A stretch of DNA of 63,216 nt, counting the filler, from Ministeria vibrans ATCC 50519 (Eukaryota; Protista; Filasterea): the NCBI GenBank assembly GCA_943704425.1. It is 5 parts of 5 records of this genome, joined end to end, with 100 filler letters (N's around TTAATTAATTAA, not from the genome) between each part and the next. Parts side by side here need not be neighbours in the genome. Positions count along the whole stretch, not along the records: positions 14,823 to 39,881 come from CALSCP010000540.1; 4 more parts are not named here. One strand, written 5' to 3'. A model generated the notes under the pieces. That model ran no database searches, was not told the DNA's origin, and saw only the letters and a program-made list of their open reading frames with translations. The position numbers were made by a program, and so were the translations under genes. Of the stretch, positions 18,801 to 42,605 are shown piece by piece (positions within the stretch are counted from its first letter, which is position 1; every line of letters begins with the position of its first letter).

Positions 18801-20608
18801 CTCACACCGCTGTGGTAGAAGGGCGTCTCGACGTAGGGCATTGGCACGTCGACGAAAGTGGCGCAGGCAAGCACGTAGGGAGAGTCGTCTTCGACTTCAA
18901 TCGCAACCGAACGTCCGACGACCGACAGGTTGCCCTGAATTGTCACAAACGGATCGGTGAGAGTGTCCGAGCCGGGCAAGCGCAAGTAGTTGTGCTGCAG
19001 TGTGAAATTGTGGATGGCTTCGGAGCAAAGATCATCGTCCCTAACGAAAACCAAGAAATGATTAGAACACTAATCAACACCTCGTAACTTAATGGTATGT
19101 TACAGATTGGCAAGACGGCACAAGCGACGCGCCTCCTTGACGCCCTCGGAGCTCTCGAGGCGCTGGATCAGAGGCGAGAGAATGCCGCCAGTTGAGAGGC
19201 AGCGCTTCTCGGCGGGCGTATGCGCAATGCCGTCGTCCTCCACCGGCTTGTAACGGATGGTGTAGTGAAACTTGCTGTCCAGATTGGGCGCAACCGAAAT
19301 GTTGAGGTTGGGGTTGTAGTTTACCCACGACTGGATGGTCACTTGTGCATCGGGGTAGCCGAGGGGCTGTTCAAGCACAATTTGTCCTTGCAGAAGTGAG
19401 TCTTCGGGGAAGGTGGCAACCGCAAACTTCTTGCGCGGCGTCGAAGTCATGGCAATGTTGGTGCAGGCGAACGGCTGTCGCTGACCGCTCTGGGGCCAGG
19501 TAGGCCAGGCACGGTAGATGTACATACCGTGACCAATGATCGAGCTGGCTCCAATGAGCTTCAGGTAAGGATCAACAAAGACAGAGGGGGCATTGGGAAA
19601 CGGTCCAAACTTGCCCGAGAGGTCTCCTTGCACGCAACCGGCAGGAAACGATGTTGAGCAGGGGAAAGTCATGTTTTGAAACCATCTAAAGAAATGAAAC
19701 GGAAAAGAGAATGAATGAAAGCCCACTCTGGAAATACAATGGGCTCTGGCGGCGTACGGCGAGAAAGGATCCATGTCTTCGTCGGGACACACAATGTTGG
19801 TGTTGCGCACAATGCCCACAATAATGTGGTTGTTGCTGGGGAGCCCTTGGAAGTTGGACGAGATCACAACGGGCGACGACTCGTTCATTTGGAAGAACGA
19901 AATGACGCCTTGCACTCCTTCGCTTTGGAACACAGCCTGTGCACTCACATTGGTCACTGCATCAAAGGAGAAAGGGGAACGAGCGGGAATCGTTTTGTGA
20001 GTATTGTCTCTTTTTTTGTTGAGAATGATAAGGAAAACGCGTGTCAATTGGCAGAGCGACGAATATACAGAGCGGAAACGCGGTCGGAGGGAACGACGCA
20101 AAGCGCACTCGTCCATGGCCCCGGTGCCGCTGCAGCCTCGGCTGTTCCATTAAGGCAAAATCGCTCACTGACACCTAATTATTATTTATTTTTTTCTCGT
20201 TGTCGTTTTTTTTTTAATCGTTTCTCTCTTCTTTTCCTCACGAGACACACACAGATTGACGGGTACAGCGGAGGAGGGCTATGTGCACGACTCGGTGGTA
20301 GACAATCGCAGGGTTAGAGAGACGCGAGGGCGCCAGGAAGGCGATAAGAGGTGAGACACAACAAAAAAAAAAAAAAAAAAGCGAGAGAGAAGAAAAAACG
20401 GATTGTCACACATACGCGATAAGAGTCGCATATAGCGACACACGCGCGAGGGTAGGGCATGGAAGAGGCATGAGTGGATGGCTGGGGGGGGCAAGGCGGG
20501 GGCGAGGGGCGTCTTACAGGGCTGAAGACCGAGAGGAAAGGGATTGGGCAGAATTTGCGATGAGACACACGCAATGGCGCCAGCAAACGCAAGTATGGAG
20601 ATCCACAT
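15899..20608 (-). CDS. Type I membrane Cu/Zn-SOD-repeat protein (CSRP-like), about 8 SOD-fold repeats, TM, short Tyr-containing tail
   Basis: Signal peptide MWISILAFAGAIACVSS (ATG 20608). Repeated GxVxFxQ...GDLSG(K/R)xG...SIVGRSVV..ACA units. TM ALIGIVVGVLALVILIVVVVVI followed by RRRK. Confidence 0.88.
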
Positions 20609-21439
20609 CAGAACAGGGACTCGGCGTCTGGGAAGTCCGAAACGAATCAAACAATTATGTTTATTTTTAATTTTATTTAAAGTATTGAAATGTAAAGTAT
20701 TGAGTCTTTTCCATTCGACAGATCGGATGTCGGACAGTCAACGGAATCGGCAACGGAATCGGGCCAAAAGAATGATCGGGCGTTTGTGCATCGCCACTTT
20801 ACACTAAATTGAACTGAAATCAATGCCGTCGTCGTCCAACCAATACCTCAACACCCGACTNNNNNNNNNNNNNNNNNNNNNNNNNNNNNNNNNNNNNNNN
20901 NNNNNNNNNNNNNNNNNNNNNNNNNNNNNNNNNNNNNNNNNNNNNNNNNNNNNNNNNNNNNNNNNNNNNNNNNNNNNNNNNNNNNNNNNNNNNNNNNNNN
21001 NNNNNNNNNNNNNNNNNNNNNNNNNNNNNNNNNNNNNNNNNNNNNNNCTGTGTCTCTGTGCATTCTTCTCAGTTATCATGGGTCAATAAGTTCATGGGTG
21101 TACCAGCGGGTTTATGGGCTTCTTTCGGGACATTCTCGTCTCGAGAACCAGTCCCTTTCAAATTGATATTGGATTAGTTATTTTTTGTCCCTCTCAGGAT
21201 AGTTCTATCCGGTGCCTATCGCTTCACTTGTCTGGCCATCAGCCAACCTGTCGCCGCTCCCTCTCGACGCTTTCGTAGTTTATAAAGTGGCTCTGAGCTG
21301 TTTGTGTTGTCGCTTTTCGTTTGTGATTGACAATACTAATAATAATAATAATAATAATATTGATAATTATTATTGTCTTCTTCTTCTAGTTATTTTTTTT
21401 TGCCGTACCAGTGTGTCACCTTGTGACCTTGTCGTAATC

Positions 21440-23062
21440 ATGGCGAACCCCATGCCTATTGAACCGTTTGAACTGTTTCAGACGATGAGAGAGATTGCTG
21501 CGAGACTTGATCATTTACAACCGCACGCTGTTCAATTCTTACGCGACGGCTTCTACTCGAATCTTGTTGATACGGCTCAAAGAACAATTCGTCAGAGGCT
21601 CGACGAGTGGAATCGCGTGGCTGCTGGCGGCGAGGAGCAGCGAAGCGATGGCGGCGAATTGTCCAACCCGACATCCTCCTCACCGCCTCCGTCAGACACC
21701 CAACAAGCACACGACTCTGCATCAGTGTCATCGGGCAGTTTGCGAGGGCAAACGAGCGTGACGGTGACCGAGCGCGAAAAGCGCGCCAAAACCGACGAGC
21801 GCGCGAAGCAACGGCGATCGCCATCTCCCACGCTGTCTCCATCGCCGAAAAGACAGAAGGTCGATTCGGCAGTGGTGCTATCGTCCGCATCAAAAGCGAG
21901 AAAGACGAGAGTGAGGGCGGGAGACAGCCAGCTCAACGCCGCAAGTGCAGCAGCGGCGATGGACTCTGCTCCGAAGCGGGGCAAATCAGTGCGGAAGGCG
22001 GCTGAGCCAGCGGCGAGCCAGGCTGCCGCGACTATGTTCACGTCGTCGGCCGAAGAGGCTGCAGGACTTGGAGAAACTGTGGACAGCGAAAGTGACGCGA
22101 GTGCGATGGACTGTGCGAATAAGCTCCTGAAAACAATCGGTACGTTTTCATAATAATAATAATAATAATAATAATAGTAATAATTTATATAATATAATAT
22201 TATTATACGGGTTAACGTGAACGTTGCTGATAAGAGCGGGTTGCTCACATCAGTCACATGTTTGTTTTGGCACAGAATTTGGTCTGGATGGGACGAATCA
22301 GTCTCGCAAAGGCCCCGTTAAGCGCAGAGAGCACAAGGCGCGTCGGTCAGGATCGACCTGCTTGGCGGAGAAGGTCAGGCTGCCAACTGCAGCAACTGCG
22401 GCAAGTCAGGCAGCGGCAACACCAGAGCCAGGCGACCACGCGGATGACAATAAGCCAGGACCAGAGAGCGAAGCACAGATTGAGGCTCTTCGTCGATCTC
22501 GACGTAATCTTCCCTTTTTTCTCTTCGTGGAAAGCCCTCGTGTTTCTCAATCCCTTTCCATTCCTCTCTCTTGTTTGTTTCAGGTCATTTTGACAACGAT
22601 AGTTTGAAGCATGCAGCCTGCCTCCACAAGAGTTTGAGCAAGAACCAGTACCGCGCACTTGTTCCGCGACCAACACATTGTTGGGTGGAAAATCCTCTGA
22701 ATCCTGTCTTTGCAACACTTTGGCTGATGCCGGATGAACATAAGATTTCGTCGTTCGAAGAGCGCTGGAGCCTCTTTTTTTTCAAGGGCGAGATTCCAGA
22801 AAATCCCACTGTCATTGAAGACATTGAAAATCTCGCGACTGCCTTGACCGATTTTTTCGATGAGGGCCACAAACTCGAGTATAGCTGGAATGTAGTGTTC
22901 ACGCAAGCCACCGACCTACTGGCAAACATGGTCGTTGCCGCTTGGTGTTCGCCCGTCTCGGACAGTGTTACGCTAATTCGACTGAACGGCTCTACTATTG
23001 AATGTACTCATCAAGATGCGAAAGGCCTTCTTGTTGTAATGAAAGCGCTCCAGTCGCAATGA
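21440..23062 (+). CDS. Island gene A: orphan, 3 exons, low-complexity middle with NLS-like SPKRQK, globular C-terminal domain resembling the gene B C-terminus
   Basis: ATG 21440. GT-AG introns at about 22140-22275 and 22504-22583 join three ORFs in frame. Stop at 23062. Confidence 0.7.
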
Positions 23063-23129
23063 ACCAATTTTTTGTTATTTTCGATTTTCATTACTCCTAA
23101 ACACACACACTCACACACATTCCCTCACT

Positions 23130-23364
<235 letters not shown>

Positions 23365-23409
23365 TATTATTCACTTCCTCGCCTCATTCCAAATCACAAC
23401 AGCGCACTC

Positions 23410-26400
23410 CTACTGTTTGCGACGCTTCTTCGCCCTTTCCTGACCAACCTCACCCTCCTCCAAATCTTCCCCCTCCTCGTGATCCTCGCAGTCGGTTGGC
23501 GCTGCTTGCAGTGTCGACAAGGACATCGCATCAGTCTCCTCTTCCAGATGCGACACACTACGCTTGGGCGCACGCGCACACTCTCTTTGACGCTCTCTTT
23601 GACGCTCTCTCTTCATCTTGACCCGCTCACGCTGCTCCCTCTCTTTTGCCTTGTAAGTAGCAAAATGTGCCGCCCGTTCCTTTATCTCGTGCGCATCGTG
23701 CGGAATCATGCGCACCGACGACGGTGCGCTCTTTACAGTGACCTGACGGCGCAGCACATACCAGCGCCCCCCTGAAAACACCACCTTATGGCCGCGTGGC
23801 GAACCCTTTAAATCTGCCGGTGCGACTCGTCGCTCTGGCAAGATGCGCACCGCTGGTCCATTCATTTCCTCGATCATCACGTCAAAGGGCTCGCCAAAAT
23901 GATCCACAAAGATACTCAAGATGAGCCAGCCCATGGCGGCAACACTCGCTACACTTTTCTTGCTCGGCTGTGCCTCATACATCTTCACAATGAGAGCCGA
24001 CACACTAATGCTCTTCAAGTCGGTCTTCAATTTTTCCCATCGCGACAGAAACTCCGCGTACCGTGAGTCTAACAATGCGGCCGTCGCGATGCGCTGCAAC
24101 ACCAGGTCGGCAAGGCGCTTCATCACCTCCGTGCCATCTTTCCGAGCTGCATGCCGGTGTTTGGAGAACTCGGGAAAGTAGTGCACCAGACCTGCGCACA
24201 GCTCACGAAGCGGTCGCGACGACAGTTCACTCTCATCGTAGTGCTTCCACCCCTCACCAAAGTCCATATTCTTCTGTGCACACGCCGCCACCTTGTCAAC
24301 ATTCTCACATGCAAACATCCACAGTTTCTCCGAAGCAGACTGCAACTGGTTTTTGGGCGACGCGTGAGTTTGCTTGTCGCTAGGCGCACGAGCAAAGGTG
24401 GCGCTTAAGAGTGCCTCCAAATCAAGATTCGCGCAATCCCGACTTTCCTTTGTAAGACGACACGTCGCCTTGCCCCACATGTTTCGTAGCTGCGATCGGT
24501 CTCGCATCTCGCCAAACATCACATTCACCTGCGTTTTGCGCAGGTCCTCAAGCTTCGTTTTAAGCTCCTCGTGATTCAAATCGGTGAGCACCTGTCGAAT
24601 CTTGGCAAATGTGGCGCGCAACTGTGTGTCCATGACATTGGGAGTGGGTGGCGTCCCGTTCCCTTTCTTGAATGTCAGAGCGAGCGCGGTCAACATGCGC
24701 GAACGCTCGCCGCGCAAATGATACGCCAAACCCTTTTTGTATCCATGAGGATAGAGCGAAGCGTCACTCAGGCATTCAATCTGACTCAAATAGGTCGCGA
24801 CTAGACATTGGCCCACAATTCGAGGCAGCTGCACGGCAACCGCATGCTGAAGCACCAGCTGCGCAGCGCGTCGAATGGCCGCATCCAGTCTCTCAGACGA
24901 CTCGTCCTTCATCGCATCGTCCAAGAGACCGCGCCCACTGTTGCGAACCTCATCGCAATCAAAGGCACTCAGGATGGCGCCTGTCAACGCCCCCTTGGCC
25001 TTCTTTTGCATAAAGATACGCTGCGTGTGCTTTGTCGATAGGAATTCGCGCATCTTGGCAATGGTGGCGACTCGCCCCTCAGTTGCAAACTTGGCAATCA
25101 TCTGTTTCACCACATTGCGCATCTGCATGGCCTCCTCATCGTCACTGTCACCCACAATTTCATCCACAAGCGGCGATTCCATAGCCGTAAGAAGCTCTCC
25201 AACAAGACGTTCCTCAAATTCCGACACACGCCTGCGTAGCGTGCCGAACATGTGAGACTGGTGAAGCCTCATCAGATACTGGACGAGACGTGTAATGCCG
25301 TCAAAGCTCGCGTCAGCGTTCACCGAGAAACACTGTTTGATCTCCACGAGAGCCTCAGACGGCATCGTATCCGCATCGATAAGGAGGGTGCGAGCCCACT
25401 GCTGGCACTCCTTCTCGTAATCGTGTAACAACTTCTCGAGGGGCGAATCGACCGTAACTTGGTCGTCTTCAGTGCAGAGAAACCCACGCGCTGACTGCAG
25501 AGCACACTGGTATAGAGTCAATCGTCGCTTGAGCTGGGATCCATCAAGACTCCGATCGTCAAAGCTTGATCCGCCACTGGACTGTCGGCCGGGACGACGC
25601 GTGTGACGCGTCTTGCCTGCCTTGAGAGAATGAGCATGCATGCTCACCTTGGCGGCCACTTCGAGATTGCCCTTGCCCACCACACTCTCGACACATCGCT
25701 CGGCATTCCCCTCAAGCTCCTTTAGGTGCGCCTTTTGGTGCTTGACAAACTCGGTAAAGCGCTGCATCAGTTGCTCCTCGCTTGACTGCGCCAGGTACAC
25801 ATGCTTGAGGAAGGCCCTCATGCCTGTCTGACGCATAAGCTGGTGATGGTCATCCCGCGGCGTCACCTTGAACAGGTCATAATCCGCCATGAGAGAGGAG
25901 AACAGCAGCGGAAACACATGTGTGAACTGAGTCTTCTTGTTGAGGACCCAACCAAGCTTCTTGAACTGGAGCTCTATCGAGTTCGCCGCATCGTCGTCTT
26001 CGCCAACTTGAATCCTGATTTCCTCCATTAAAACCTCTTTTAGCTTTTTCTTGCAGCCGGCCTTCCATAATTCGACCTGCTGACCGAGCGAACAGTTGTC
26101 CGCATTGTCGGTTGTGTCGGCCTGCAGGGTCTCGATTGTCACAGTGTCGTGACGCTCCTTGCTCATGAGAAAAGTGATGGCGGGAAAGTCGGCGCCGGAC
26201 GGGTCGTTGAGAAGACGCGGCAAGAGGTGCCGTTTGAAGGTGTTCAGGACATTCTCCGACGATGACAGATCTCGGTTGATGAGCGCAATAACGTGGTCAC
26301 TGTCATTGAGTGCCTGAGCCAGCATGGACACTTTTTGCGGGTTCAATTCGTTGCTGCCTGGCGCATCGACAATCTCCGTGTTAAGGCGTCGCAGGACGGT

Positions 26401-28323
26401 GGAAGGAATGAAGACGGTAACACGCTTAATGAGCAGCGCGTCGGGCGAATCCAGCAGCGTGCGAAGCATGTGACGCAAATACACACGGTCGTGGAGGATG
26501 TCTTTGCCACCTGTGAGCAGCACACGAGGTTTGCCCAAGAGCGCAAGACGATCGGGGTGCACAACCTCATGAGGGTTGCGCAAGAACTTGTCGACGAGAT
26601 CAATGTCAATGGGGACAAGGGGCAAACTGGGAAGCCTGCTCTCAATCTCGCCGCTCGCTTCGTCCTCGTCTTCATTGTCCGAGTCGCTGTCGCCCAAACC
26701 ATAGTCGAATTGACCACGCGTGGTAGAGCTAGTCGCCATGGGCTGGTCCAGGTCAATGGCAGTCGGGGTGCTTGTCGAAGTGGTGGTGGTGGTACTCGTA
26801 GTTGTCGTTGCAGGGTGGCATTTTGAGAAGGATGTGGGGTAGGACGAGAAGCAGGGCGGCTTCTGGAGGCAGCGCAGAATTTGGACGAGAAAACAAGCCG
26901 CAGCATGCCCGACCGGATCCTGTCCTGGGCCCTTCTTCTTTGCCAGCTTAAAGTCGGTTGTCTCCACGCGGCGCTTGATCTCTTCAAGAGAGAGAATGTG
27001 GATGCAAGCATGAAAGAGTGAACTGTAGCGCAACGCGATCTGGCAGCTTGTTGTTGACGTGTTGAGATTCTTGCTCGGAAGGATGTACGCACCCGTGCCC
27101 TGAGGGTTGCCGACGGAGACACGTGCGTTCGTTTTGCCCCGTGCGTGTCCCTCAAGATCAACGACCAGATCCTTTTCCATTTTGAGGCGATCAAACAGCG
27201 AGCCTGCTCGGAGGCGACCAGTCGCACGATCGAACAGCATCTCGTCCGGCAACTCGAGCGGGGCGTCGGTGGAAGCACCGAGAAGCGCACAGGCTTCAAA
27301 ACACTTTCGATGCGATGAGTTGAGGTGTGCATACTCGTACGCCAGAAGCTCAGAAGAGCGACCCAGTTCGTTTGCCAAAAACGACTTTCCTTCGTTGTTG
27401 TCGGCGAGCAGCACTGACTTGCTGACGCCAACGCCAGCCTCGCTGTCCGCTTCTCCTTCGTTTGCATTGGGGTGTTGCAGCAGCTCCAGCTCTCGAAGGG
27501 ACGTTGTCAGGAACTCCACTGCCGGATCCGAATGCTGCGTCGCGTCTTCTTCGCTGTCGTTGTCACTGTTGTCGTCAGCCTGGTGGTCCGCCTCAGGCAG
27601 CAAGCTGTTGAGATTGCGGCGAAGAGAGGACAGGTGTTTAACGACAGCATTTGACAACTCGTCGCGGGTGTCCATGTCGGGAAGGATCGCCCCAACGCTG
27701 GGTGTCTCGTTGTCGACGTCCGTCTCATCGCCATCATTTTCGTCGTCGTCGTCGTCTTTGCCGTCGTCGTCTCCGGCCGTAGCGCCCTCGTCGTCGTCGT
27801 CGTCAGCGGAGGTGTCCATCGCATCCGACAGCATCCATTCAGTGTACTCGGAGAAGACGAAAGGGTCCTTGCGGCCGCCAGGGAAGCCAAAGACGCGCTG
27901 GAAGATGGGATAGAGGTCGTGCTTCGGTCCGTACGACGTGTAGAGCGGCTGCTGACTACGCAGGGTGGGTGCATCAAGCCCGAGAGGCCGCCTTTTGCAC
28001 TTCTTTTGCAGGAATGCGACAGTTCGTCGATGGTCAGGACCGCAGACTGACCGATAGAGCTGAGAAGGAGCAGAGAGCAGTAGTAGAAAGGGAAAATAAT
28101 GTGTCAAAAACAATTATTGTGAGTTGTCATTTCGACTTACTTGGAAAAGATCAATGTCAGGGGTGCTTCCTCGCGCTTTGGTCAAGCTTGCGAGTCTCTT
28201 GTCAACGGCCTCTGGCGTGTTACAACGGTACTTCTCGCCGATGAACACGCGGAGCTCTTCGTTGAATTTCTTCTCGATGTTTTTCTCTTGCGCGCGAGTT
28301 GTGCGCTTCTCTTCCATCGCCAT
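23410..28323 (-). CDS. Island gene B: ~1600 aa dynamin-like (DLP/NUGGC-type) GTPase with helical stalk and degenerate OTU-like C-terminal domain; 5' end uncertain
   Basis: G1 LLADNNEGKSFLANEL (27382-27405), G2 ILPS..STTSCQIALRY, G3 EIVDAPGSNE, G4-like FLMSK. 4.6 kb exon. C-terminal AKKRRKQ. Confidence 0.75.
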
Positions 28324-29098
28324 CGCGTTCCGACGCCACCTGAGAGGATTCGCAGTACATGGCGTTCATCACAACATTGAAAGTGTTTTACAAAGGGGAG
28401 CCCAGAACACAGGAGAGAGAGGGAAAGGGGGAGGGAAGGGGAAGAATACAGAGAGGGACACGGAGCAAGAAACAAATCACGTTCAAAGAGAAGGCACAAG
28501 AGCACGTCTGCGTTCAAGAAAACCATTGTCACATTGCAACACATCCAAATCATGCAGATTGCAGCAGGCAATGCTGCTGGGGAGATGTGTTTCTCCAACG
28601 AATCATCGAAAGAAAAAAATTAACGAGGAAAGTACCTCTCTCTCTCAGGGAACAGAAACGGCAGCGGATAGCTCAGTGTGCTAAACTACTGAACGCTTGT
28701 TCAGTGTGTGTGCCTGCTTATCAAGCGGAAGAAACACGAGACAAACAGCGAAATAAAAGTGTTCAGTGTGGTTGATTGATCAGAATTGAAAAAATTATCC
28801 TGTTGTACTTCACATCGTGAATTTCGAGACAGACAGACAACAATCGGACGATCCTTTAGCAGTAAATGGTTTAGTCAGACTGGTTGTAGCAGTAGGGCGA
28901 AGAATCGCTGCCTCTATCACCGTCTACACTGCCAACGAGTAGGTTTCAACAACGCAACAACAACAATCAGTCTTTTTTTCCTCCTGGAAAAATTCCCTTG
29001 GGATGGGTTAATCAATTATTTTGTCTTTTTATAATTTAAATTTTAGCCACTCTTTTTCTCTCTCACCGCTCTCCAACTCGTGACAGACTGACAGTCTC

Positions 29099-31598
29099 AT
29101 GTTTGAATACCGTCACTCAAGTGACGCAAACACCATTACTTATGACGGTAGGTTGCATTATTCTAATTGTCCGCTTCGTTTTCTCGCGACCCACCTCCAC
29201 CAACACAATCCCATAATGGCCTTACCGACAGCCCCAATATACCCTTCTTATCCCTTGTCGGATGCCCATTGCTTTAATGCTCTTGCAGCCTGTCTCGTTT
29301 GCCTGGAAAGTTGAAGTCGGATTAATCAGACTTTGACGATGTGACAAATTGACAATGAATAATTATTTTTTGATTTTTCTCCATTTAAATTCGTAGACCA
29401 ATCGCCCCTTGTCCCCCAACCGCCCGCTCCTCAAGCTCTTGATGGCAACATCAACGACATGTCGCTGGGCGACGCGGTCACGGAACTGGCGGAGAACGCA
29501 CTTGAAGCCAACGCAAAGAACTTCGCGTACACATACACGGACGAGGCGATCGCCATCCACGACGATGGTGACGGCATGAGCAAGGAGGGGCTGCTTGCCT
29601 TTTCGCAGATGGGCGGCACCACACGCCGTGCGGCGTTCGAGCAGGCCAGCTCAATTGGCCGCTACGGCGTCGGCTTCACGTCGCTGTTTCGTCTCGGCCG
29701 ACGCGTTGTTGTCGAGAGCAAGACCGCGGGCCAGCCGGCGCACAAGGTCACTTTTAATCGGGTATGATCCTGTTGTCTGCGTCGGTGTGAAGGCGTCACG
29801 AGACGAAATGTTCAATGGTTGTTTTGCAGGATCGCATGATTGCTGAGGGAAAGTTCGCTGGCACCGCTCCCGAAGAGGTCGCGCCGTCCTCCCACGACGA
29901 CTCGTACACACACTTCACGATCACGTGCATCGACTCGAATGCGCTCGAGGAAGACGCCATCGACGACATGAAGCGATTTGTCGCGACGAAGCTGTCGCTT
30001 ATCCTTCGTGGCGGTCCTCATTACCTCCACCCCGATCGTGTCAAGCTGCACTTGATCGAGCTTATGCACTGCAACGTACAATTCAAGAAGGAACCGTTTA
30101 CTGTGCGCATTGACAATTGGAACAGTCGCAATGAGGAGGACCTCAACGCCTACGACCGCAACTTCAAGGTGTTCCAGCACATCAGTGGCGAGGCATGCAC
30201 CATCCTCAAGCTTCCTGTGGTTGTCGAAGACTCTCAGCCGTCACAGAGCAGCGCAGTTCCCGTTGCACTTCTCTACCTTCGCTACCGTCCGCTGACCATC
30301 GAAGACCCCGAAGTACCCAGCGCCAGCACGAAGACGATGCGTGTGTTCTGGCACGGCATGGATCTCACTGCAGGCGCCCAGAGCCAGCAGCTCCACCAGC
30401 TGTAAGAATGCCTCGAGCTCTTGTTTTTTTTCTTTTCTTTTACAGTTGCTTGACTCACAACAAACACACAGGTTGCAGTTTCTTATTGATTGTCTCGGAA
30501 ATGAGATGACGAAAAGCACAGGAGTGCGTCTGAAGAGCCGCTGTCCGCGTGTCGACGCAATTCTCTTCTTGCCTGTTCAGGCGCAGCCTGAGGTTTGCCC
30601 GAGCTCCCACAAGCGGTCGATAACTCTGGACGTATGTCAAATGGGCCTCACTGTCGAGTCACAACTGACTGTCATTCTCACACACTTGACAGACTCCCTA
30701 CCTGAAAGCAGCGCAAGAGGGTAAATTCGACCGTGCGACGCAGGCGGACAGCGCCGGTCATCCCGGTGTTCGCTTTGTAAACTGGCTCCGGAAGAGTGCA
30801 GAGCAAGACACAACGGTAGGGCGACTGAAAGGGCAATTTATACTGACATTGTTTCTGTTAATTGCTGTCACAGTGGCTCATTGACGAGAGCTCTCTGATG
30901 CCACTTCAACAAGGGGAGGCGCCCAGCGAACATCAAGCGAAATTCAAGCAAGTGCGCAATGGCAGCGGTGTTATCGAAATGGGCAACCACGTCCGTCTCA
31001 AGCACTCTCCCGATCTCCCACCCGTCATTGGCCAAGTGCAGTACTTTTCGCGCGTGCTTGTCAAGGACCAAGTGGCACGACAGGCGAATGCGCCACTGTT
31101 CACTCTCATGGTCACCCTTCAAGAGCGCTATCTAACAAAACCCACAACATACGAGCTTCCAGGTGACGTGCGAAAACAGCCCACTGCCGCTGACAAGAGC
31201 AAGTATGACAATCTCTTCCCTAAAAATTTTCGCCAAGTAAAATTCCCGAATCGGCTGAACAAAGGAGGTACGAGTCGGACAAGAGGAAGTATGCTCGAAA
31301 AAATTGTGTTGATATGAATTGTTTGTATGCACGCACGTAGACGAACAGAATATCAAATTGCATTTGGAGAGCTTTGCGAAAGAGCTTGTACCGTCGAGCA
31401 CCAAGTATGCGGATGGCCGAGAGCTCAAGCTCCAAGTTTGCCTCGTGTCGATGACGCAGACGCTTGATGGTGATGTACCTTGCAAATGTCCCCTGCCGGC
31501 GCGATGCGCGGCCCGTCTGATCCAGTCGTCCGCTCTCGGCTCTCCCTCAAGACGGAGCAGTAAGGGTACATCTCTCTTCAATAACACGCTCTCTCAAC

Positions 31599-31640
<42 letters not shown>

Positions 31641-33082
31641 ATCTTTGCCTTTCCCCAGGCTCGAAGGAGCACTTTTACTCGTATCCGGCGCCAACGGATC
31701 GGCTGGGCCAGATTGATCTCACGTTTGCAGTCTATGCTTCGATGTCAGAGGCGAAGTTGAAGGTGACCCCCGAGATCAAAGTCACATACATAGTGGCCCC
31801 CGAGTACGGTGTGCCTGCAATGCTTGAGCTCTATGATGCCAACAGCTCCTTGTCGAAATGCATCCTCAACGCTCCCGCGGCTGGACATCTGCTGAATGTT
31901 TGCGTTCGTGATGACAACAAAGAAATCATCCCCACGGCGTTCCTCAACCGTAAATATCCTCATGCGATTTTCTCGCTTGGAGTGGTGTCCGCTGGAAGAG
32001 AGCTTGCGGTAGTGAATGACTCTCGGAATTCGTACCCCACCGTGTCTGTGAAGACGCCACGCGTGCCACAAGGGAAGTTCTATTCGGTGACGGCTGCTAG
32101 CTGCTGGGGAATTGAGGGACCTGTGGACTACATGCCGCTGAGCGGTCAAGCGGACAAACTGGTTTGCACCCTCAAGTTGAGCAAGGCAGACGAGAGCGCG
32201 GACGAATCTGAGCTCGTGGTGGAGCGAACTCTCTCGGTGTGTTCCAACACTCTGAGTCTTGTGGTGGATGGCAGCGAGCCTGTGCCAGTAAACGAGGAGT
32301 TTTCCTTGGAGGCCGCAGTGATTAGCAAGGACGAGAGTGTGGTGCACGGCGAGGACACGAGCCAGTTTGTTTTGGAGGTGATGGGCAGGAGTCGGGCACA
32401 GTGGGAGCTGTCGGTTTTGAAGGTGCGACCACAGGCGCTAGCATCGGGACGCAGTCGTCCGATGCAAAAGATTTTGAAGGTGAAGATCACGTGCGTGTTG
32501 AAATGGATTGGGGGCGGTCCTGTGCCGACAGGAGTCAAGCAAGTGCACCTGAAAGTCAAGTACCTACGACTGGCGGAAAATATTGGTCTGCAAGTGCAGG
32601 CTGCGACGCCCATGAAGAAGCGCTTGCGCGAGGAAGAGGAGGTTGACGACGAGGAGGCTATGGACGACGAAGACGAAGAAGAAGAGGGCGAGGAGGAAGA
32701 GGAAGAGGAAGAAGAAGAAGAAGAAGAAGAAGAAGAGGGCGAGGAGGAAGAGGAAGAAGAAGAAGAGGGCGAGGAGGAAGAGGAAGAAGAAGAAGAGAAA
32801 GCGGAAGAGGAAGAGGAAGAAGAGAGTCCTCGGAAGAAACGGCGCGATGAGAAAGGTGCGGTGGACGTGCAGAAGCAGAGCAAGGTGGAGGAGAAGCGAC
32901 AGAAGAAGTTGGCGGGTCTGCATGGCTCTCTGACCGAGCATTTAAATGCGATGGAGGAATTGCACCGTCAGGAAGTAGAGCTGAAACGACAGTTGAAAGA
33001 GGTGAAGCAACAATTTCAGGTCAAAAAGGAGTTGGCCAAGAGCATTAAGAAGAAAATCTCCCTGCTGAAGGAGCATCATTAG
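29099..33082 (+). CDS. Island gene C: SMCHD1/GMI1-like GHKL ATPase (GHKL, transducer, BAH-like, Ig-like), acidic tract and coiled coil, no SMC hinge; about 8 exons
   Basis: Bergerat motifs ELAENALEA, IHDDGDGMS, SIGRYGVGF. Downstream YLRYRP, VFWHG, RVDAILFL, FVNWLRKSAEQD and GNHVRL..PVIGQVQYF parallel SMCHD1 IRYHP, CFWNG, RISGALF, FTLWLKDCHEKYD, GQLVK..LFYGSIVRF (recalled). Confidence 0.75.
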
Positions 33083-33139
33083 TGAGAAGAGAGAACGAGA
33101 GGTTTTATATGAATGAAAAAGATCTGAGTTGGTTTGTTT

Positions 33140-34396
33140 TTATGTGCTCACACTTGTAAAGCGACCGATTTTGGCCGCGACAGGCGTACATCGATCGCGA
33201 TCGTGCCGGTTAACAACGACACGGACGTCCCAGAACCGCCGTGAATGTCGAGTGTGACCAATAGTGGGGAGAGCGCGTCGTACACCGAAGACAACGTCTG
33301 CTGTACCCCTGCGTTTGTTGCCCTCGTAGAGCACCATTGTGAGCGGGATTCCAACTGACTCACTTGGCGTGGTGCCAGGGATATTCGCGTTTTGCACCTC
33401 AAATCGCTCAGTCGGGCTGACTAGGTGTGGTTTTCGTACTTCGTCAGTCGGGCATGGGACTTCCGATCCTCTTACAACCATTGTGTACTGCTGCAACGGT
33501 TGGAAGTTTATAGCGGGCATCTCAAACGTAATCTTGGCGGTCAGGGCGCCTTCATACGAGATCTTGCCTCGCATTTTTGGAAGTATTTCCCCAAATGGGT
33601 CCTCGTGATAATTTGTCGAGGACGAGCTCACTCGCTTGATTGGAAGAGTGATGAATTGCGGGAATGCTTCGCCTCGTTTTAGCGCTGGCGCATCTGTGTG
33701 TCTATCCACGGTTAAGGTGCCACAGCCCCTGTCGCTTTCCTCCGGCCGAGACGCTTGAGATCGTAACTCTTCAACAATCGCATCGCACCACTCGTTCTGA
33801 GTCTTCAAAGCGTCCGCAAGTCGCTGGAAGAGAACAGGGTGCCAGTGAGTGAGAGAGTAAAGAAAGCCGGTCGGAAGACAAACTACCGAGACAAATTGTG
33901 TGAGTGTGTGTGTGTGTGTGTGGAGGGGGGGNNNNNNNNNNNNNNNNNNNNNNNNNNNNNNNNNNNNNNNNNNNNNNNNNNNNNNNNNNNNNNNNNNNNN
34001 NNNNNNNNNNGTGCATATTGAGAGTGAAGGTGCATATTGAGAGTGAAGATACATTGAGAGTGAAGGTACATATTGAGAGTTACATATTGAGGTGAGAGAT
34101 TTAAGGTGGAAACAGAAGAGACTTCACATTCCAATTGCTCACATCTTTGTCCTGCTGCTCGAGCTGGCTCTCTGGCTTTGACTCAGAAACGATCTCTTTA
34201 AGCTTGTCCTTATGCTCCTCAAAATCCAAGTAGCTGACCCAGTGTAATCGCCTCACAATAGAGAACATCCGTGGGAGCAGTTCAGGGTGGCTCTGAGCCA
34301 ACCGTACCAATGACGCGTACTCCGAATCTCTCTCTTGCAGACGGAGGATCTCTCCTTCCTCAAACGAAAACGAGAGGAGGGAAATTATGTCATCGT
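33140..34396 (-). CDS. Island gene D: orphan with helical N-terminal part and beta-rich C-terminal part; 5' end unresolved
   Basis: Exons at about 34396-34143 and 33823-33140 are joinable in frame by a GT-AG intron that spans an N gap. Confidence 0.55.
34011..34092. repeat. Short tandem repeat CATATTGAGAGTGAAGGT
   Basis: About 5 degenerate copies next to an assembly gap, within the gene D intron. Confidence 0.7.
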
Positions 34397-34930
34397 CTAC
34401 AAGAAAAGATTAGACGCAACTCAGAGCTCACAGCGGTCGATAAACTACGGCAGCCCCTCCGCCCCAGTCTCAATGCCCCATGGTCCGTCGTCCACCGGCC
34501 CTTCGACGCCTGAAATGTATTTTCCAGGGGTGGCAGAAGTTTTGCTTTTGCTTCAAATTTTCACCCCCACAAAACGCAAAGGCTGAAGACAACTGAGGGT
34601 CCTTGTCACAAAATCAAAGAAGCAAAGCGTATATGTAGTTCACATACGAAGAATGCGAGCGAAATATGCAGCGCAAAGGCGTACTCATTCTATGGAGCTG
34701 TGAGATCAAAAATTCAAAATTGTTAGCCACCGTTACTCCGTTAGCCGGCAAGAGCCAAAATGCGATTTTGAATGAATAGAAAAATTAATTAAGGTTGATA
34801 AAGAGTAAACCATAATTATTTTCGCCGGAAAATATTTTTACTACTATCATTAATTTAATCTCGCGACGTAGAGACTCCTAGGCAGCTTTTTTAACCTTCT
34901 TTCCGCGCCATATCCGCGGTTCTGTTAATT

Positions 34931-37900
34931 TTGTACTCGTTGTGGGCGCAGCAAGGAGTACGCCTCGATGGCCAGTGGGTGTTTCTGACCGTTGGTGTTC
35001 GTTTTGGATTTTTCCCCACAGTGACCTCGCGCGTCAATATTCCACTGGCCACAAAGCGCCAACGCGACAGCAGCGATGAGGAGAGCGACGATGAGGAGAG
35101 CGGGAGACCCCGAAGCCCCCTCGACGTCATTCGCGATGTGAACGACGAGAGTTCCGACGACGACGAAGATCTGCAAGAGTCGGTGTTTGCCCAACGACGC
35201 TCTCCCCGCCTCCCGCACGCCGCGACCGCCGCAGCATCCCCCGAGCCCGCCCCCGCAAGTGTCGCTGCTACAGCCACCGATGCGCCCGCCAGCACGCCCA
35301 GCACGCCTCGCGTGGCAGTCGTGCCAGACACACCACCGCCCGACGACAGTGCCGACGGGCGCGAGAAGGCCGCGAGCCCATTTTCCATGACCGAGGCGTG
35401 CCGCATCAACACGGAGACGCTCAACATCATCATCGCCAACAGCTCGAACATTTTAACGGCAGTCAGAGAGGAGGCAAAGGCCAAACTGGCAAGCTATCAC
35501 GGCCAGCACACCTCGATCGCCGTGGTGGGAGCCCTGGGCGTTGGCAAGTCCTACACCATCAACTGCCTCGTGGCAAGCAGCAAGTTCCTGGCCGAGCACA
35601 ACTGTCAGAGCCCCGTTGGCTCAGTGCCACTCAAATCCAGTGCGGGAATCCTGTCTTGCACCAACAACATGGTCAGCATCACACACAAACCCGGGCCTTT
35701 CCAGATCGCGATCGATCGCTACACATTCACCGAGGAGAAGCGACCGGGTATGTCGAGTGCCTCCACTGCTACAATTTGCAGCGAATTTCTTCACGACAAT
35801 CTCGACTTTGCCGCTCTCTGTACGACCCTCGATGAAATGTTTCGGCGGGATCTTGGCATTGACGCGATCATTCGCCTGTCGGGACCGTTCGACATCCCCG
35901 AAAAGATCACTCTGTACGACACGCCCGGACTTGGTGATCAGTCAGACAACGACGAACAACCTTACAACACGCCACTCATGCGACATCTGCTCACCGACGC
36001 TGACGTGCTTGCCATTGTTTCTATGCGTCGTGCTTCGCGCGAGGAGATCACCTCCCTCATTGGCCGCGGTGCGCTCAGTGGTGTGCTCCGCAGGGCCGAT
36101 AACAAGACTCCAGTGGTGCTCAGCATCTACCGTGCCGACGAGCGCGACGTACAAGGTCACTTGCAAGAGGCTCGTCGTCATATTGAACGTGCCATCGACC
36201 AGGTCCTCTCCGGCACCCAGACCATTGCTGGTGTCGAGTTCCGCGACGATCAACTCTGGCTTGTTGACGCGATTCGCCGAAACGTCACACTCCTCTCGTC
36301 TGTGGGCCTAGACCAACGCCACGACGGGGCGGTTCGAGTTCTCGAGAACGTCCGCGAGCTCTCGCTGACAAACATCGCGTCGGCCGCGCTCTCAAGTGTC
36401 GCTAAAATGCTATTCAGTCACCTGAAACTCTCCACGTCTGCTGCCAACTACTCGAACCCAAAGAAGCATTTTACAAAGCGCTGGAACAAGCTTGTTGAGG
36501 CACTGCACTTCTCGAGCGATGTCACTGTACTCCATGAGAGCGACACGGCACAAAGAGCGCTCGAGGATGCCACCGAGCGGCTCCACGATTACTTTGAGGA
36601 AAATGAAGACGTGGTCAAGAGCCCGAGTCGCTCCGCAGGCGTTGTCGTCCACTACTCGCGCGGATTCCTCAAGCATTCGTGCGTCCACCTTGTTGTTCAG
36701 CATGTTGTCGACAGTTTCCAGCGGTTTGCGGTGGAGCTCAAGAACAACGCCAAAGGCAACAAGAAGGGCGGGTCAAAGGCGGCCAAAGATGAATCAGAGG
36801 AGAACGAGGGGCTCTACGCGGCTTTTGTGCTGGATGAGGATGAGCTGAATGCGAAGATTGAGTCGTCCGTGCTCGATGTGAGTGAATTCAGTCAGAGCGT
36901 CGCGACGACTTTTGCACAGTTGTTTGCCGCGAAAGAAGACCTTGGCGAACGTCGCCGTGTGCTCTGGTCGGTTGTCAAGCAGGAGTTTCTCGCCATCATC
37001 AACACGAAGAAGGCGACACTGTTAAACACGGTGCGCGACTTTCTGACCAGCTCCTTCACGAAACTCTCGCAAACGATCCAGGGGGTGTCTTCCAGCAAGG
37101 GCGAGACTCGTGAGGAGGTTCACAAGCAAATCAAGCAGCTCACGACCATGATCCGTGACATGCAAGTGCGCCGACGCACGGCAAAGCAAATGGTCAGCGA
37201 CATGCCTCGCCAGGACCCTAACTTGATTGTTGAAGAGCTTCGCAAGCTCGCCATCACCGGTTCTTCAGCAACATTGCGTGCTCCGGCTTCCTCTCCTTCT
37301 CCCAAAGCCGCCGCTGCAGCTGCCGCGCCCTCTTCAGCCCGACCAACGTCGCCACCCACCCACGAACTGGCGCCGCCCGCCAAATCGCTGAGTGTCAAGG
37401 TTGAAGAGGCGTCGCGGCCAACAAAAGGCATTCCTTCTTGCCTACTTGAGCTCGATGAGTCCGTTGTGATTGTGTCCGCGGTAGCAGCGCGTGCGGAAAA
37501 GGCGGCCAGCTCTGGCTGGACCTTTAGTGGACCCATTTCCAAGATCAAGGCGCACCTTCAGCCCGGAAACCAAAAGATCCAAACGACTCCTGTTTTGTCT
37601 ATCCTCACGCCCAACGTACTCCCCAAGAAGCTCAAGATTCTCGATCTTGTCTTTGGCGAGCGTGCCCTGAACATCGAAGAGTCTCGCTCTGTGTTTCTTG
37701 TTGTTGACGCTCGCTTCCCACAGCTCGCCGATATCACAGAGACCATCACGAAGAAGATCAAGTCGGCGACCTCTAACCAACCGATGCTTGGCTTTCTTGT
37801 CATTACTGGCGACGACCAGGGCGACACGATTGCCTCCTGCGACATGTGCACCAATGCAATGCGGTTCTTTGCGAGCGGTGCCCTCTGTGCTGAGCGTTTC

Positions 37901-38788
37901 TGGTTCCTCGAGCCCGGCATTAGCGACACGTCTCCTGTGTGGAACCCGCGGGGGCTCTACAGCGTGACGACGCCCATTCGAAGTTCGATCGACCGCACCG
38001 AACGAGACTGGCTGGCGATCTTGGCGGCCAAGGAAAAGTCCCAACGATTAGCACTCGCGAAGCTGTCCACTCCTATTGAAGTCGATTTTATAGACACTCC
38101 CGACAAGGGTGTTGACCTGCTGGAGAGCATTCTTCGGCAAAAACGGGCAAGTCACCCGTCGTTCAAGATTTGGGTGAGAGGGCTGAAGGCGGTGAACCGC
38201 GCGGCCATGAAAGTCGACGAGAAGGTTTTGGGAATTTGCATCGAGTGCGTGCGCGAACTCAGTCAGGAAGTTGATGGTTCACTCAGCGCTGAGCATCTGG
38301 AGCTGCGTGCCATTATTGACGATATTCTGGCGGTGGACAGTGTCGACAAGCAGCTGGTGGCTATGGGCTGGATGCCGTCTCCGTTTCAGGTGCACACAAT
38401 ACTCTCTGCGAGCCCCAAGACGTACCGGTTTGCGCGCAACTACCGCGACTCAAAAAACGTGGCACGCATGGCGGGACTGCGTGGTGCTGTGCTGTTTAAC
38501 TCGCAAGCGTTGCGGGCTGAATATGCCGGACCATCGCCGACGGGAGGGCGCGCGATAACGAACGACGTCTCCGGTTTCAAGTGGGAAAACGACCTTGTGG
38601 ACACACGGCGCAAGTTTCTCAACAAGATGTGCAGCAAGAACAGTCACCTTGCCGTCATGATCAACTTTTTCCTGGCACCGACTTACGCCAAGGCAGCGAA
38701 GTCGGGGCAGGAGTCAGCGAAGCCGACGCAGGAGGCGTCCCCGAGGCCATCCCCGAGGAAGCGCTCACGAAAGAAACAATTTGTGTGA
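34931..38788 (+). CDS. Island gene E: ~1260 aa dynamin-like GTPase with helical stalk and C-terminal degenerate GT-A (GREB1/TAGT-like) domain; true start possibly ATG 34968 plus a short intron
   Basis: G1 GALGVGKS (35528), G2 LKSS..SCT, G3 LYDTPGLGD (35918), degenerate G4 SIYRAD. 3.8 kb uninterrupted ORF ending RKRSRKKQFV. Confidence 0.78.
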   Translation: MYSLWAQQGVRLDGQWVFLTVGVRFGFFPTVTSRVNIPLATKRQRDSSDEESDDEESGRPRSPLDVIRDVNDESSDDDEDLQESVFAQRRSPRLPHAATAAASPEPAPASVAATATDAPASTPSTPRVAVVPDTPPPDDSADGREKAASPFSMTEACRINTETLNIIIANSSNILTAVREEAKAKLASYHGQHTSIAVVGALGVGKSYTINCLVASSKFLAEHNCQSPVGSVPLKSSAGILSCTNNMVSITHKPGPFQIAIDRYTFTEEKRPGMSSASTATICSEFLHDNLDFAALCTTLDEMFRRDLGIDAIIRLSGPFDIPEKITLYDTPGLGDQSDNDEQPYNTPLMRHLLTDADVLAIVSMRRASREEITSLIGRGALSGVLRRADNKTPVVLSIYRADERDVQGHLQEARRHIERAIDQVLSGTQTIAGVEFRDDQLWLVDAIRRNVTLLSSVGLDQRHDGAVRVLENVRELSLTNIASAALSSVAKMLFSHLKLSTSAANYSNPKKHFTKRWNKLVEALHFSSDVTVLHESDTAQRALEDATERLHDYFEENEDVVKSPSRSAGVVVHYSRGFLKHSCVHLVVQHVVDSFQRFAVELKNNAKGNKKGGSKAAKDESEENEGLYAAFVLDEDELNAKIESSVLDVSEFSQSVATTFAQLFAAKEDLGERRRVLWSVVKQEFLAIINTKKATLLNTVRDFLTSSFTKLSQTIQGVSSSKGETREEVHKQIKQLTTMIRDMQVRRRTAKQMVSDMPRQDPNLIVEELRKLAITGSSATLRAPASSPSPKAAAAAAAPSSARPTSPPTHELAPPAKSLSVKVEEASRPTKGIPSCLLELDESVVIVSAVAARAEKAASSGWTFSGPISKIKAHLQPGNQKIQTTPVLSILTPNVLPKKLKILDLVFGERALNIEESRSVFLVVDARFPQLADITETITKKIKSATSNQPMLGFLVITGDDQGDTIASCDMCTNAMRFFASGALCAERFWFLEPGISDTSPVWNPRGLYSVTTPIRSSIDRTERDWLAILAAKEKSQRLALAKLSTPIEVDFIDTPDKGVDLLESILRQKRASHPSFKIWVRGLKAVNRAAMKVDEKVLGICIECVRELSQEVDGSLSAEHLELRAIIDDILAVDSVDKQLVAMGWMPSPFQVHTILSASPKTYRFARNYRDSKNVARMAGLRGAVLFNSQALRAEYAGPSPTGGRAITNDVSGFKWENDLVDTRRKFLNKMCSKNSHLAVMINFFLAPTYAKAAKSGQESAKPTQEASPRPSPRKRSRKKQFV

Positions 38789-38953: not shown

Positions 38954-39505
38954 ATGAGATGTTTCAAAGAAGGTGCGGAGCAATCAGTGCAGAGAGATTA
39001 TTAAGTTTGAAAGATTCATTAATAAGACGTGGTGCTTTCTTTTGCTTTTTCTCGCGATGGATGAGTCGAATCCATCAGCACAGCAATTCACATTGGCACG
39101 CGTTCTTTTCAATATCGTTGGTCGTGAGCCTCTCGTCGACAAGAAATCTTGTAGCGAGAAAACTCGCTGTGGCAGGAAGCAAGAAGGGCCTTGATCACCT
39201 CGAACGTATCACATAAAAGAGTCGCTGACGCAGCGAGTGCGCGTAAAGAAGGTGCGGGGCGGACATTCGCTAAAGGTCTCCTGACGCGCATTTACGCGGC
39301 CACCAGCCTCTGGTCAAACTAGATGACGACATCGATGCGCTCCGATCAAGCATATACTACTATAATTGTATACTTCATGTATCTCTCTTACACACTCTCT
39401 CTCGCTCGCTCGCGCTCACACACACACACACTCTCTCTCTCTCTCTCATACTCGCTCTCACTCTCGCACATCGCATCAAACCCTTTTTACCCCTTTCACG
39501 CTCCC

Positions 39506-39881
39506 TCACGCATCCGACCACGGACGGTACCCGCCAGCCGCATCGTCCGTCGACCCATCCTCATCATTGAGCTTGTAATGGCCCCCGCCAGCCATGCCTC
39601 CCATCTGGATTGCGTCGCCACCCGACTTGCGACGGCGGATCACCACAGCAAACACAGCAACAATCAGCAGCGACAGAACACCCACCACAATGCCAATCAA
39701 CGCCCCTTGCGACATTCCTCCCCCGTCGCCCGTGTCCCGCTGTGCCTCGTCCGGCACCGCCGTAAACCCCAACACAATCGGAGTGCACGCCACAATGTTC
39801 GACGGTGTTCCAATCATCAGCGACTGGCCCACCACCGACTGCGCTCCCTGCAACGGCAGTCCCGACACTCCCACCAGCACC
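39506..39881 (-). CDS. 3' end of a second SOD-repeat membrane protein paralog (truncated by contig end)
   Basis: Near-identical to 15899-16273 in the last repeat and cytoplasmic tail. Diverged in stalk and TM. Confidence 0.85.
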
Positions 39882-40005
39882 NNNNNNNNNNNNNNNNNNN
39901 NNNNNNNNNNNNNNNNNNNNNNNNNTTAATTAATTAANNNNNNNNNNNNNNNNNNNNNNNNNNNNNNNNNNNNNNNNNNNNAGAGAGAGACAGAGAGAGA
40001 GAGAC

Positions 40006-40048
<43 letters not shown>

Positions 40049-40064
40049 GGAGAAAGAAACAAAG

Positions 40065-40111
<47 letters not shown>

Positions 40112-40337
40112 AAGAAACAAAGTGATAGAGAGAGAGAGGAGGGAGAAAGAAACAAAGTGATAGAGAGAGAGAGGAGGGAGAAAGAAACAAAGTGATAGAG
40201 AGAGAGAGGAGGGAGAAAGAAACAAAGTGATAGAGAGAGAGAGAGGAAGTAGAAAGAAACAAAGTGATAGAGAGACGGTGTCGCGGGTTGATTGATGTCG
40301 CGGGTTGATTGACGCCGTGGCGCACGTTGTTTTCAGG

Positions 40338-41641: not shown

Positions 41642-41703
41642 TATTATTAATAAAGTATTTTACTAAGTTAGTACAAAAACCATAACTGCTGTTGCATGCG
41701 CGA

Positions 41704-42269: not shown

Positions 42270-42605
42270 ATTGAAAGGTGAGCCAACTGACTTTGAGTGT
42301 TGACTGGAACTAAAGTGAAAAGTGCGAAGCGAGTAAGATCAAAAAGTCTCTTTTATTTGCTACACTAAACGGTACGAGTCGTGGATATAGGTGGATATGG
42401 GATTTGGTGGGGTATCTTGGGGCATATCGTGTGATGACCAAGCTCCAATCGCTTTGTCTATGAGCTGACAGGAAAATACCGTGTGCGCACTTTTGGGCCA
42501 TTTGGNNNNNNNNNNNNNNNNNNNNNNNNNNNNNNNNNNNNNNNNNNNNTTAATTAATTAANNNNNNNNNNNNNNNNNNNNNNNNNNNNNNNNNNNNNNN
42601 NNNNN

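Follow-up and report, generated by a model that had tools for sequence, protein, structure and literature searches.

Gene content of the locus

Five divergent genes, here called A to E, lie at 21440-38788 of the window, by which is meant the whole 63,216-nucleotide stretch of Ministeria vibrans ATCC 50519 DNA presented here, and three of them, C, D and E, were found together again at a second place in the same genome. The part analyzed was 14823-39881, the complete contig C540 (CALSCP010000540.1; 25,059 bp) of a eukaryotic genome assembly of 29.7 Mb in 2860 contigs. These three genes encode a GHKL ATPase that can fairly be called MORC-like (C), a small orphan protein (D) and a dynamin-like GTPase (E), and they may constitute a conserved cassette. 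The genes, and the regions between the head-to-head neighbors, were annotated as follows:

21440-23062, plus strand: gene A, a probable three-exon orphan, defined by open reading frames (ORFs) only, with exon 1 at 21440-~22138 and the last exon at ~22679-23062
23410-28782, minus strand: gene B, a divergent dynamin-superfamily-like GTPase of 1610 aa, defined by spliced RNA contigs, profiles and paralogues
28783-29097, no strand: B/C intergenic region, about 315 bp between the outermost transcribed exons
29098-33082, plus strand: gene C, a MORC-like GHKL ATPase of 1064 aa, with seven GT..AG joints in RNA contigs and a HATPase_c_3 match
33140-34396, minus strand: gene D, a small orphan of ~313 aa if the predicted start holds, present in RNA contigs of four runs
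34397-34968, no strand: D/E head-to-head intergenic region, which also contains the 5' intron of D; the same layout occurs on contig C498
34969-38788, plus strand: gene E, encoding a dynamin-like GTPase (~1260 aa) whose C-terminal domain is new, within the ORF 34931-38788

The alternating order of the five genes (A+ B- C+ D- E+), with B/C and D/E as head-to-head pairs, had been described in an earlier note on this DNA, and was confirmed. The same was true of the two long exons, put there at 3.8-4.6 kb, which measure 4650 nt in B (23410-28059) and about 3.8 kb in E (34931-38788). All four of the basic motifs reported as resembling nuclear localization signals were also located: A contains SPKRQK and C contains SPRKKRR, and B and E carry AKKRRKQ and RKRSRKK, respectively, at their ends.

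The mapping of RNA contigs took in 28000-33900. The introns of B, C and D were canonical (GT..AG) in these contigs, and B, C and D are spliced and transcribed genes. Such spliced contigs came from runs under two organism labels and also from a polyA metatranscriptome of marine origin. Between B and C, RNA contigs ended at 28782 on the side of B and at ~29098-29102 on the side of C, and the interval 28783-29097 is a candidate bidirectional promoter.

Recurrence of C, D and E in the genome

Genes D and E have one paralogue each in this genome, D' and E', and both of them are on contig C498, next to a paralogue of C. The order on this contig is E' (33244-36960, minus strand), D' (37257-38542, plus strand) and C' (39874-42536, plus strand), so that D' and E' are again head-to-head, about 300-500 bp apart, and C' is inverted relative to D-E when compared with the window. 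The identity between the two loci was 52% for E, 40% for D and 54% for the GHKL exon of C, and amino-acid identities of 40-55% imply that the duplication of C, D and E is old. No other homologous genes were present in the flanks of the two loci. The two copies of the D/E intergenic region showed no nucleotide conservation and no common promoter motif. As a separate observation on C', a 1.7-kb gap of N following a (GA)n run (C498, ~40290-41900) interrupts this gene.

A third locus (C986:82452-87827) carries C'' and a decayed remnant of D reduced to its last ~50 codons; no E or Dynamin_N match was found on C986. C'' and C' are 94% identical at the nucleotide level in the head and 89% in the tail, and the synonymous divergence (dS) in their comparable parts, 0.02-0.04, represents too few changes for the ratio of nonsynonymous to synonymous divergence (dN/dS) to be informative. 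The flanks on C986, which hold this truncated D-like fragment, are 75-79% identical to C498. This uneven identity suggests gene conversion or a strong constraint on the GHKL gene.

The C family thus has four GHKL members, namely C, C', C'' and a divergent one at C498:14877-18378. This fourth gene is built like the others, with a HATPase_c_3 head (E 1.3e-17), a long uncharacterized middle part, an acidic tract and a Lys-rich tail ending in KKKAKRK; it lies 15 kb from E' and has no adjacent GTPase.

The earlier proposal of a five-gene module therefore stood in part: C, D and E recur on C498 with the D/E layout kept, while the paralogues of B and of the last exon of A lie elsewhere, unlinked to them. 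The repeated adjacency can nevertheless be understood as chance, C, D and E, and A and B even more so, being unrelated lineage-specific genes that do not act jointly, and the neighborhood of C, D and E having been copied in one old segmental duplication of a gene-dense genome; this explanation is a real, if somewhat doubtful, possibility. The recurrence is paralogous and not independent, the orientation of C differs in the second copy, C'' persists on C986 without E or an intact D, the fourth GHKL gene lacks an adjacent GTPase, the paralogues of B are solitary, and P0001, a distant relative of E in another eukaryote described below, has no GHKL neighbor. Chance has to account, however, for duplicated blocks that share exactly C, D and E and no other gene at 40-55% identity, for a D/E pair that is head-to-head in both copies, and for the decay of the D copy that lost E. 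It also has to accommodate two divergent dynamin-type genes within 10 kb, which we estimate to be a ~1% event given the ~14 such genes in 29.7 Mb.

Gene C and its GHKL head

The transcript of C begins with a 5' untranslated (5'UTR) exon at 29098-29146, followed by an intron at 29147-29395. The coding sequence (CDS) was distributed over seven exons (29459-29760, 29829-30401, 30472-30631, 30693-30814, 30873-31265, 31339-31559 and 31659-33082), and its 3195 nt are in frame, every exon being free of stops. In the family and structure searches the proteins of C, D and A were queried one exon at a time. The first coding exon corresponds to the GHKL head, with a match to Pfam HATPase_c_3 (PF13589) at E 1.4e-15 and 58 bits against a cut-off of 25. 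The GHKL motifs ExxxN, DxGxG and GxxGxG are intact, and residues E9, N13, D35, G37, G39, G67, G70 and G72 are invariant in the four paralogues; the assignment of C to the GHKL ATPases, made in the earlier note, was thereby confirmed.

When a profile of the four paralogues was compared with the PDB, MORC3 was the first match (5.8e-9), followed by MLH1, HSP90-family chaperones, PMS2 and MutL, and the lead of MORC3 over MLH1 and HSP90 was small. SMCHD1 was absent from the best 60 PDB profile matches, and no exon of C matched an SMC hinge. "MORC-like" is therefore a fair label for C as judged from its sequence, and the former label "SMCHD1-like" is unsupported, MORC3 being the best solved relative by profile.

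The ~900-960 residues beyond the head, encoded by exons 2-7, yielded no Pfam, PDB, PADLOC or NCBIfam domain, the NCBIfam search returning only a low-complexity artefact. An S5/transducer domain was undetected in exons 2-4 (Pfam, PDB), and no exon of C had a Pfam match to a CW zinc finger. This part of the protein contains a beta-rich-looking region, a poly-Glu tract (32630-32830), the SPRKKRR motif and a Lys/Glu-rich tail of coiled-coil appearance. A helical-looking tail of the same kind is also present in C' and C'', and the SPRKK motif is conserved in C, C' and C''. In PADLOC, the head scored best against Tiamat TmtA (3.5e-8), over model positions 66-135 of 1552 only. Two further candidates were discarded: a kinship between D and the beta-rich region of C was rejected after comparison, and a BAH-like reader in exon 5 received no support from domain or profile searches.

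Some particularities of the C transcripts were also recorded. The spliced C mRNA contig from run X9 has ~840 nt upstream of 29098 that are absent from contig C540; the 30 letters at the join map to C2411:67432-67461 (minus strand), and the join has no canonical splice signal. The C mRNA from run X8 begins at ~29102 and lacks the C2411 part. Either the X9 contig is chimeric, or the join represents an alternative 5' exon or structural variation among strains. In addition, the RNA contig from run X15 (organism A) differs by a single G>A at window position 32925, downstream of the poly-Glu tract and near the 3' end of the CDS, which may reflect allelic variation, a difference between strains or an error.

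Gene E and its C-terminal domain

The long ORF of E (34931-38788) has no early ATG. E and E' share a splice acceptor just ahead of the conserved start, and the ATG at 34969, together with a short 5' intron ending at 35021, is the predicted start of the gene. The G1 (GALGVGKS) and G3 (DTPG) motifs are invariant in E and E', which are 52% identical. E' passed the Pfam Dynamin_N cut-off (28.6 bits against 27, profile positions 1-139 of 168); E itself remained below it, with a P-loop match only. The nearest clusters of E in a protein-language-model atlas (Atlas) were Dynamin_N (score 0.96) and included "nuclear GTPase SLIP-GC-like".

Beyond this genome, relatives of E were scarce. When 1.84 billion representative proteins were searched exhaustively (HMMER) with a profile built from E and E', two distant matches were obtained, both restricted to the GTPase half. 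The better one, P0001, was aligned over 407 columns with 97.8% probability and belongs to a 15-kb contig of another eukaryote on which no GHKL gene is present. Co-location of such genes in other organisms, which the earlier note had set as a test, was consequently not encountered for E, P0001 having no GHKL neighbor. No relatives were found by a word-index search, in which low-complexity words may have swamped candidates, and of these searches the exhaustive one alone can be trusted.

The C-terminal domain comprises ~430 aa (ORF aa 825-1256, window 37403-38698) and is the best-conserved part of the protein, with 57% identity between E and E'. It had no Pfam or PDB match, and its AlphaFold2 (AF2) model was unusable, with a predicted local distance difference test score (pLDDT) of 32. 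A TAGT/JGT glycosyltransferase domain had been suggested earlier; no glycosyltransferase was detected in the C-terminal domains of E and E', either in Pfam, down to E 10, or in the PDB, and the suggestion was not confirmed. Basic tails are kept at the ends of both E and E'. Separately, a 1769-bp contig (C2043) contains at 108-269 a 54%-identical piece of the stalk region of E (aa 571-630, E 5e-5), which may be the remnant of a further copy of E.

Gene D

Gene D has exons at 34396-34143 and 33823-33140, separated by a GT..AG intron (33824-34142). Its upstream exon contains no in-frame ATG, and a first coding exon of only 4 nt is predicted near 34685-34688. No match to D was found in Pfam, PDB, PADLOC or NCBIfam, and its only relatives in the genome were D', at 40% identity, and the decayed fragment on C986.

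Genes B and A and the extent of the cassette

Gene B is transcribed from a 5'UTR exon (28634-28782), and its CDS (28323-28141 joined to 28059-23410) starts at the ATG at 28323 within the exon 28141-28337; the introns are 28060-28140 and 28338-28633. The mRNA is fully covered by RNA contigs of 5.1-5.2 kb from runs X8 and X9. The P-loop reads ADNNEGKS (G/AxNGxGKS in the paralogues), and a G3 motif, DAPG, follows ~390 alignment columns downstream; no G4 motif (N/TKxD) is conserved across the alignment of the four-member family. All four members stayed below the Dynamin_N cut-off of 27 bits, B with E 0.004 and the paralogues with 1e-5 to 4e-4, the best reaching 25.8 bits (E 1.3e-5). The nearest Atlas clusters of B were Dynamin_N/DUF7605 (score 0.95-0.96). 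The description of B and E as dynamin-like, given in the earlier note, is thus supported more weakly than its other observations: E' exceeds the Dynamin_N cut-off and the Atlas neighbors of B and E are Dynamin_N clusters, but E itself and the B family stay below the cut-off.

The AF2 model of the GTPase region of B was of low confidence (pLDDT 46.7). Its residues 309-556 matched generic P-loop GTPases with Z 6-7 (VIA), and although these matches included Cj-DLP, mitofusin and BDLP, they were below the level at which families can be distinguished; the best Foldseek match had an E of 0.07. The C-terminal FGEPF region of B has no known counterpart, and basic tails are kept at the ends of all four B-family proteins.

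The three paralogues of B (on C1613, C1883 and C1345) are 29-42% identical to it, have no C, D or E within ~20 kb and share no common neighbor. Relatives outside the genome were not found by the word-index search, which is less sensitive and in which low-complexity words may have swamped candidates. The alignment between B and E was restricted to the P-loop, and therefore they are not a related pair. By these comparisons, B is a member of a separate four-gene family of divergent GTPases that is next to the cassette only here. Gene A, in turn, has a low-complexity first exon, containing SPKRQK, and a globular-looking last exon, with no Pfam or PADLOC match and no recognizable domain. Two paralogues of its last exon, on C473 and C2431, are unlinked to B, C, D or E, and A is probably an unrelated neighbor outside the cassette.

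These data bear on the proposal of a single nuclear system made up of all five genes, which would defend against viruses or transposons or silence them and would resemble the paired bacterial dynamin-like proteins (DLPs) of defence combined with MORC/SMCHD1. Two divergent large GTPases and a GHKL ATPase inside 15 kb, their membership in small families within this genome (four B, two E and four GHKL genes), the near absence of relatives elsewhere, which fits fast-evolving conflict genes, and the basic tails all agree with such a system. It is improbable all the same: A and B do not recur with C, D and E, B and E are unrelated beyond the P-loop, no TAGT domain was detected, and PADLOC returned nothing for B, D and E and only the generic GHKL head for C.

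Alternatively, B and E could be membrane-remodelling dynamin-like proteins of an organelle or the nuclear envelope, their polybasic tails binding acidic lipids and the GHKL neighbor being incidental. Most characterized members of the dynamin superfamily act on membranes, the top fold matches, although non-significant, were the bacterial dynamin pair 5owv, mitofusin and BDLP, and B and E have short hydrophobic stretches ahead of their tails. No segment of transmembrane length was seen, however, the genome already has canonical dynamins (127 bits with Dynamin_N), the SLIP-GC type of nuclear GTPase is among the nearest language-model clusters, and the retained linkage of C, D and E would be left unexplained. 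A membrane role was consequently considered rather unlikely.

Continuity and origin of the block

The assembly is interrupted within the island at one point, and a microsatellite lies between A and B:

33932-34010, no strand: assembly gap, a run of N inside the D intron 33824-34142, bridged by transcripts
23138-23361, no strand: (TC)n microsatellite between the 3' ends of A and B, detected with Tandem Repeats Finder

The gap has a (GT)n run on one side and a 19-bp tandem repeat (34011-34080) on the other. RNA contigs of four runs (X8, X9, X15 and the polyA metatranscriptome X19) depart from the genomic sequence at 33823 and resume at 34143, and the 30 letters after the departure occur only once in the window, at 34143. 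The upstream exon of D closes on a complete codon at 34143 and the downstream exon opens one at 33823 (phase 0); since the exons join in phase 0 and transcripts cross the gap, no reading frame is broken there. A second run, of 187 N, is found at 20861-21047, between the genes of the left flank and A.

That the block is a chimeric scaffold had been raised in the earlier note. As far as this could be tested, it proved continuous, the RNA contigs bridging the gap and linking C to D, and DNA runs of independent studies contained 0.52-0.99 of the words of the stretch. The public runs containing it bear coded organism names or are labelled as 'algae', 'seawater' and 'marine' metagenomes, and in those labelled organism C about a fifth of the words is present. 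The only long repeat bracketing the region is a 300-nt direct repeat with 84% identity (15898-16197 and 39505-39804), whose copies are the 3' ends of two paralogous minus-strand Sod_Cu-type genes that flank the island. The left one (15899-19054, minus strand) is a 1051-aa ORF with a Cu/Zn superoxide-dismutase domain (Sod_Cu, E 4.8e-33), and the right one extends past the contig end. An interpretation of this repeat as a terminal repeat was rejected on these grounds.

Introns and satellites were those of the host, as previously stated, and so was the composition. The GC content at third codon positions (GC3) was 0.51-0.78 in the island genes compared with 0.55-0.73 in neighboring and housekeeping genes. 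A (GA)n run at 38813-38915 matches the (TC)n run at 23138-23361, both are like satellites on other contigs, and these runs are ordinary satellites of the host genome.

Consequently, it is very improbable that the block was carried in by a large mobile element, stems from an integrated giant virus, or is an assembly chimera or a contaminant. The 300-nt repeat around the region and the single RNA contig joining 29098 to C2411 could be taken as indications of such an origin, but the repeat belongs to host paralogues, the ORFs scanned with Pfam contained no integrase or transposase domain, and no relatives of B and E were found in viral and metagenome contig collections. The host-type composition and introns and the transcripts across the gap also speak against it. 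Viral GHKL matches of 28-32% identity were obtained and set aside as generic, being no evidence of relationship. No sign of a mobile, viral or contaminant origin was found, and the selfish-element cargo considered in the earlier note was dismissed, there being no element repeats, integrase, viral relatives or odd composition.

Comparison with known systems

The closest comparison for C is with the MORC proteins, such as MORC3 and the plant MORCs, with which it shares an N-terminal HATPase_c_3 head, intact ATP motifs and, as read from its sequence, a long build, a coiled-coil-looking tail and a basic motif; it differs from them by the lack of a detectable S5/transducer domain and CW zinc finger. 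With SMCHD1 the resemblance is one of architecture only, a GHKL head followed by a long beta-rich-looking region, without the SMC hinge. For B and E, the comparison is with the dynamin superfamily, including SLIP-GC (NUGGC)/DUF7605 and the bacterial DLPs. Both share the large GTPase, the G1 and G3 motifs and the matches to Dynamin_N, their nearest clusters are Dynamin_N families that include SLIP-GC-like and fungal DUF7605 proteins, and their basic tails are possible nuclear signals. They differ in that the DUF7605 match was not significant (E 6), B lacks a conserved G4, and neither the C-terminal domain of E nor the FGEPF region of B has a known counterpart.

The NTPase (nucleoside triphosphatase) classes present here are also known from anti-phage defence, in Eleos (LeoABC) and Tiamat/paraMORC. 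A, B, D and E had no PADLOC match to a catalogued defence system, however, and C matches TmtA in the head only, without its DUF3684 core, nuclease or C-terminal effector. Moreover, the genes described here are eukaryotic and intron-bearing, and do not form an operon. Eukaryotic homologues of Tiamat have been reported in a preprint (10.64898/2026.09.30.754977). The protein classes are known, and the two GTPase families and the association of C, D and E are undescribed as far as the searches reach.

Interpretation of the cassette

Taken together, a conserved cassette of C, D and E whose products work together, possibly in the nucleus, is our tentative choice, held at less than an even chance. 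Among the explanations it is the single most likely one, and a plain segmental duplication is nearly as likely. Under this explanation the three products would act jointly, and a bidirectional promoter would drive D and E in concert. C would, like the MORCs, clamp DNA or chromatin as an ATP-driven dimer, with E as its GTP-driven oligomerizing partner and D as an adaptor. The ATP-binding motifs of C and the GTP-binding motifs of E are intact, and the D/E head-to-head region is short in both copies of the cassette.

The basic tails of E, E' and all four B-family proteins, together with the SPRKK motif of C and its close copies, are what points to the nucleus, and a nuclear localization of these proteins may be proposed from such basic motifs. 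The MORC-like head and the SLIP-GC-like neighbors fit a nuclear role as well, although none of these facts is a proof of it.

Several observations weigh against cooperation. One segmental duplication of 10 kb would suffice to explain the recurrence within the genome; linkage that is retained is no proof of joint function, and with C' inverted there is no fixed operon-like order. Compact genomes often contain head-to-head gene pairs, and a polybasic tail may also serve to bind membranes. The cassette could not be demonstrated in any other organism, and the P0001 contig, with its 15 kb, holds no GHKL gene. Furthermore, both structure predictions were of low confidence, and co-expression could not be ranked from the RNA contigs.

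A more specific version of the cooperative cassette would be an undescribed eukaryotic nuclear NTPase system for genome defence by silencing viral or repeat DNA, in which a MORC-like clamp, coupled through a small adaptor to a dynamin-like GTPase with a new effector or sensor domain, diversifies by duplication. This version is unlikely, though not negligible. B would then be a further, looser member, and the whole a functional counterpart to the multi-NTPase defence systems of prokaryotes, which is just as speculative. For NTPases that are duplicated and lineage-restricted, a role in defence or silencing can reasonably be guessed, albeit with a small chance of being right.

The locus is therefore a well-documented, lineage-specific gene cluster and not a demonstrated system. 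Even without any cooperation with their neighbors, the GTPases encoded by B and E stand out by their isolation and are good targets for structural and functional work. If C, D and E do cooperate, this would be, to our knowledge, the first case in which a MORC-type ATPase is linked genetically with a dynamin-type GTPase, and it would provide a dynamin-like protein that has a new ~430-residue domain and is likely to reside in the nucleus. Such a coupling would also bear on how eukaryotic genome surveillance may be built from NTPase parts that are used in bacterial immunity as well.

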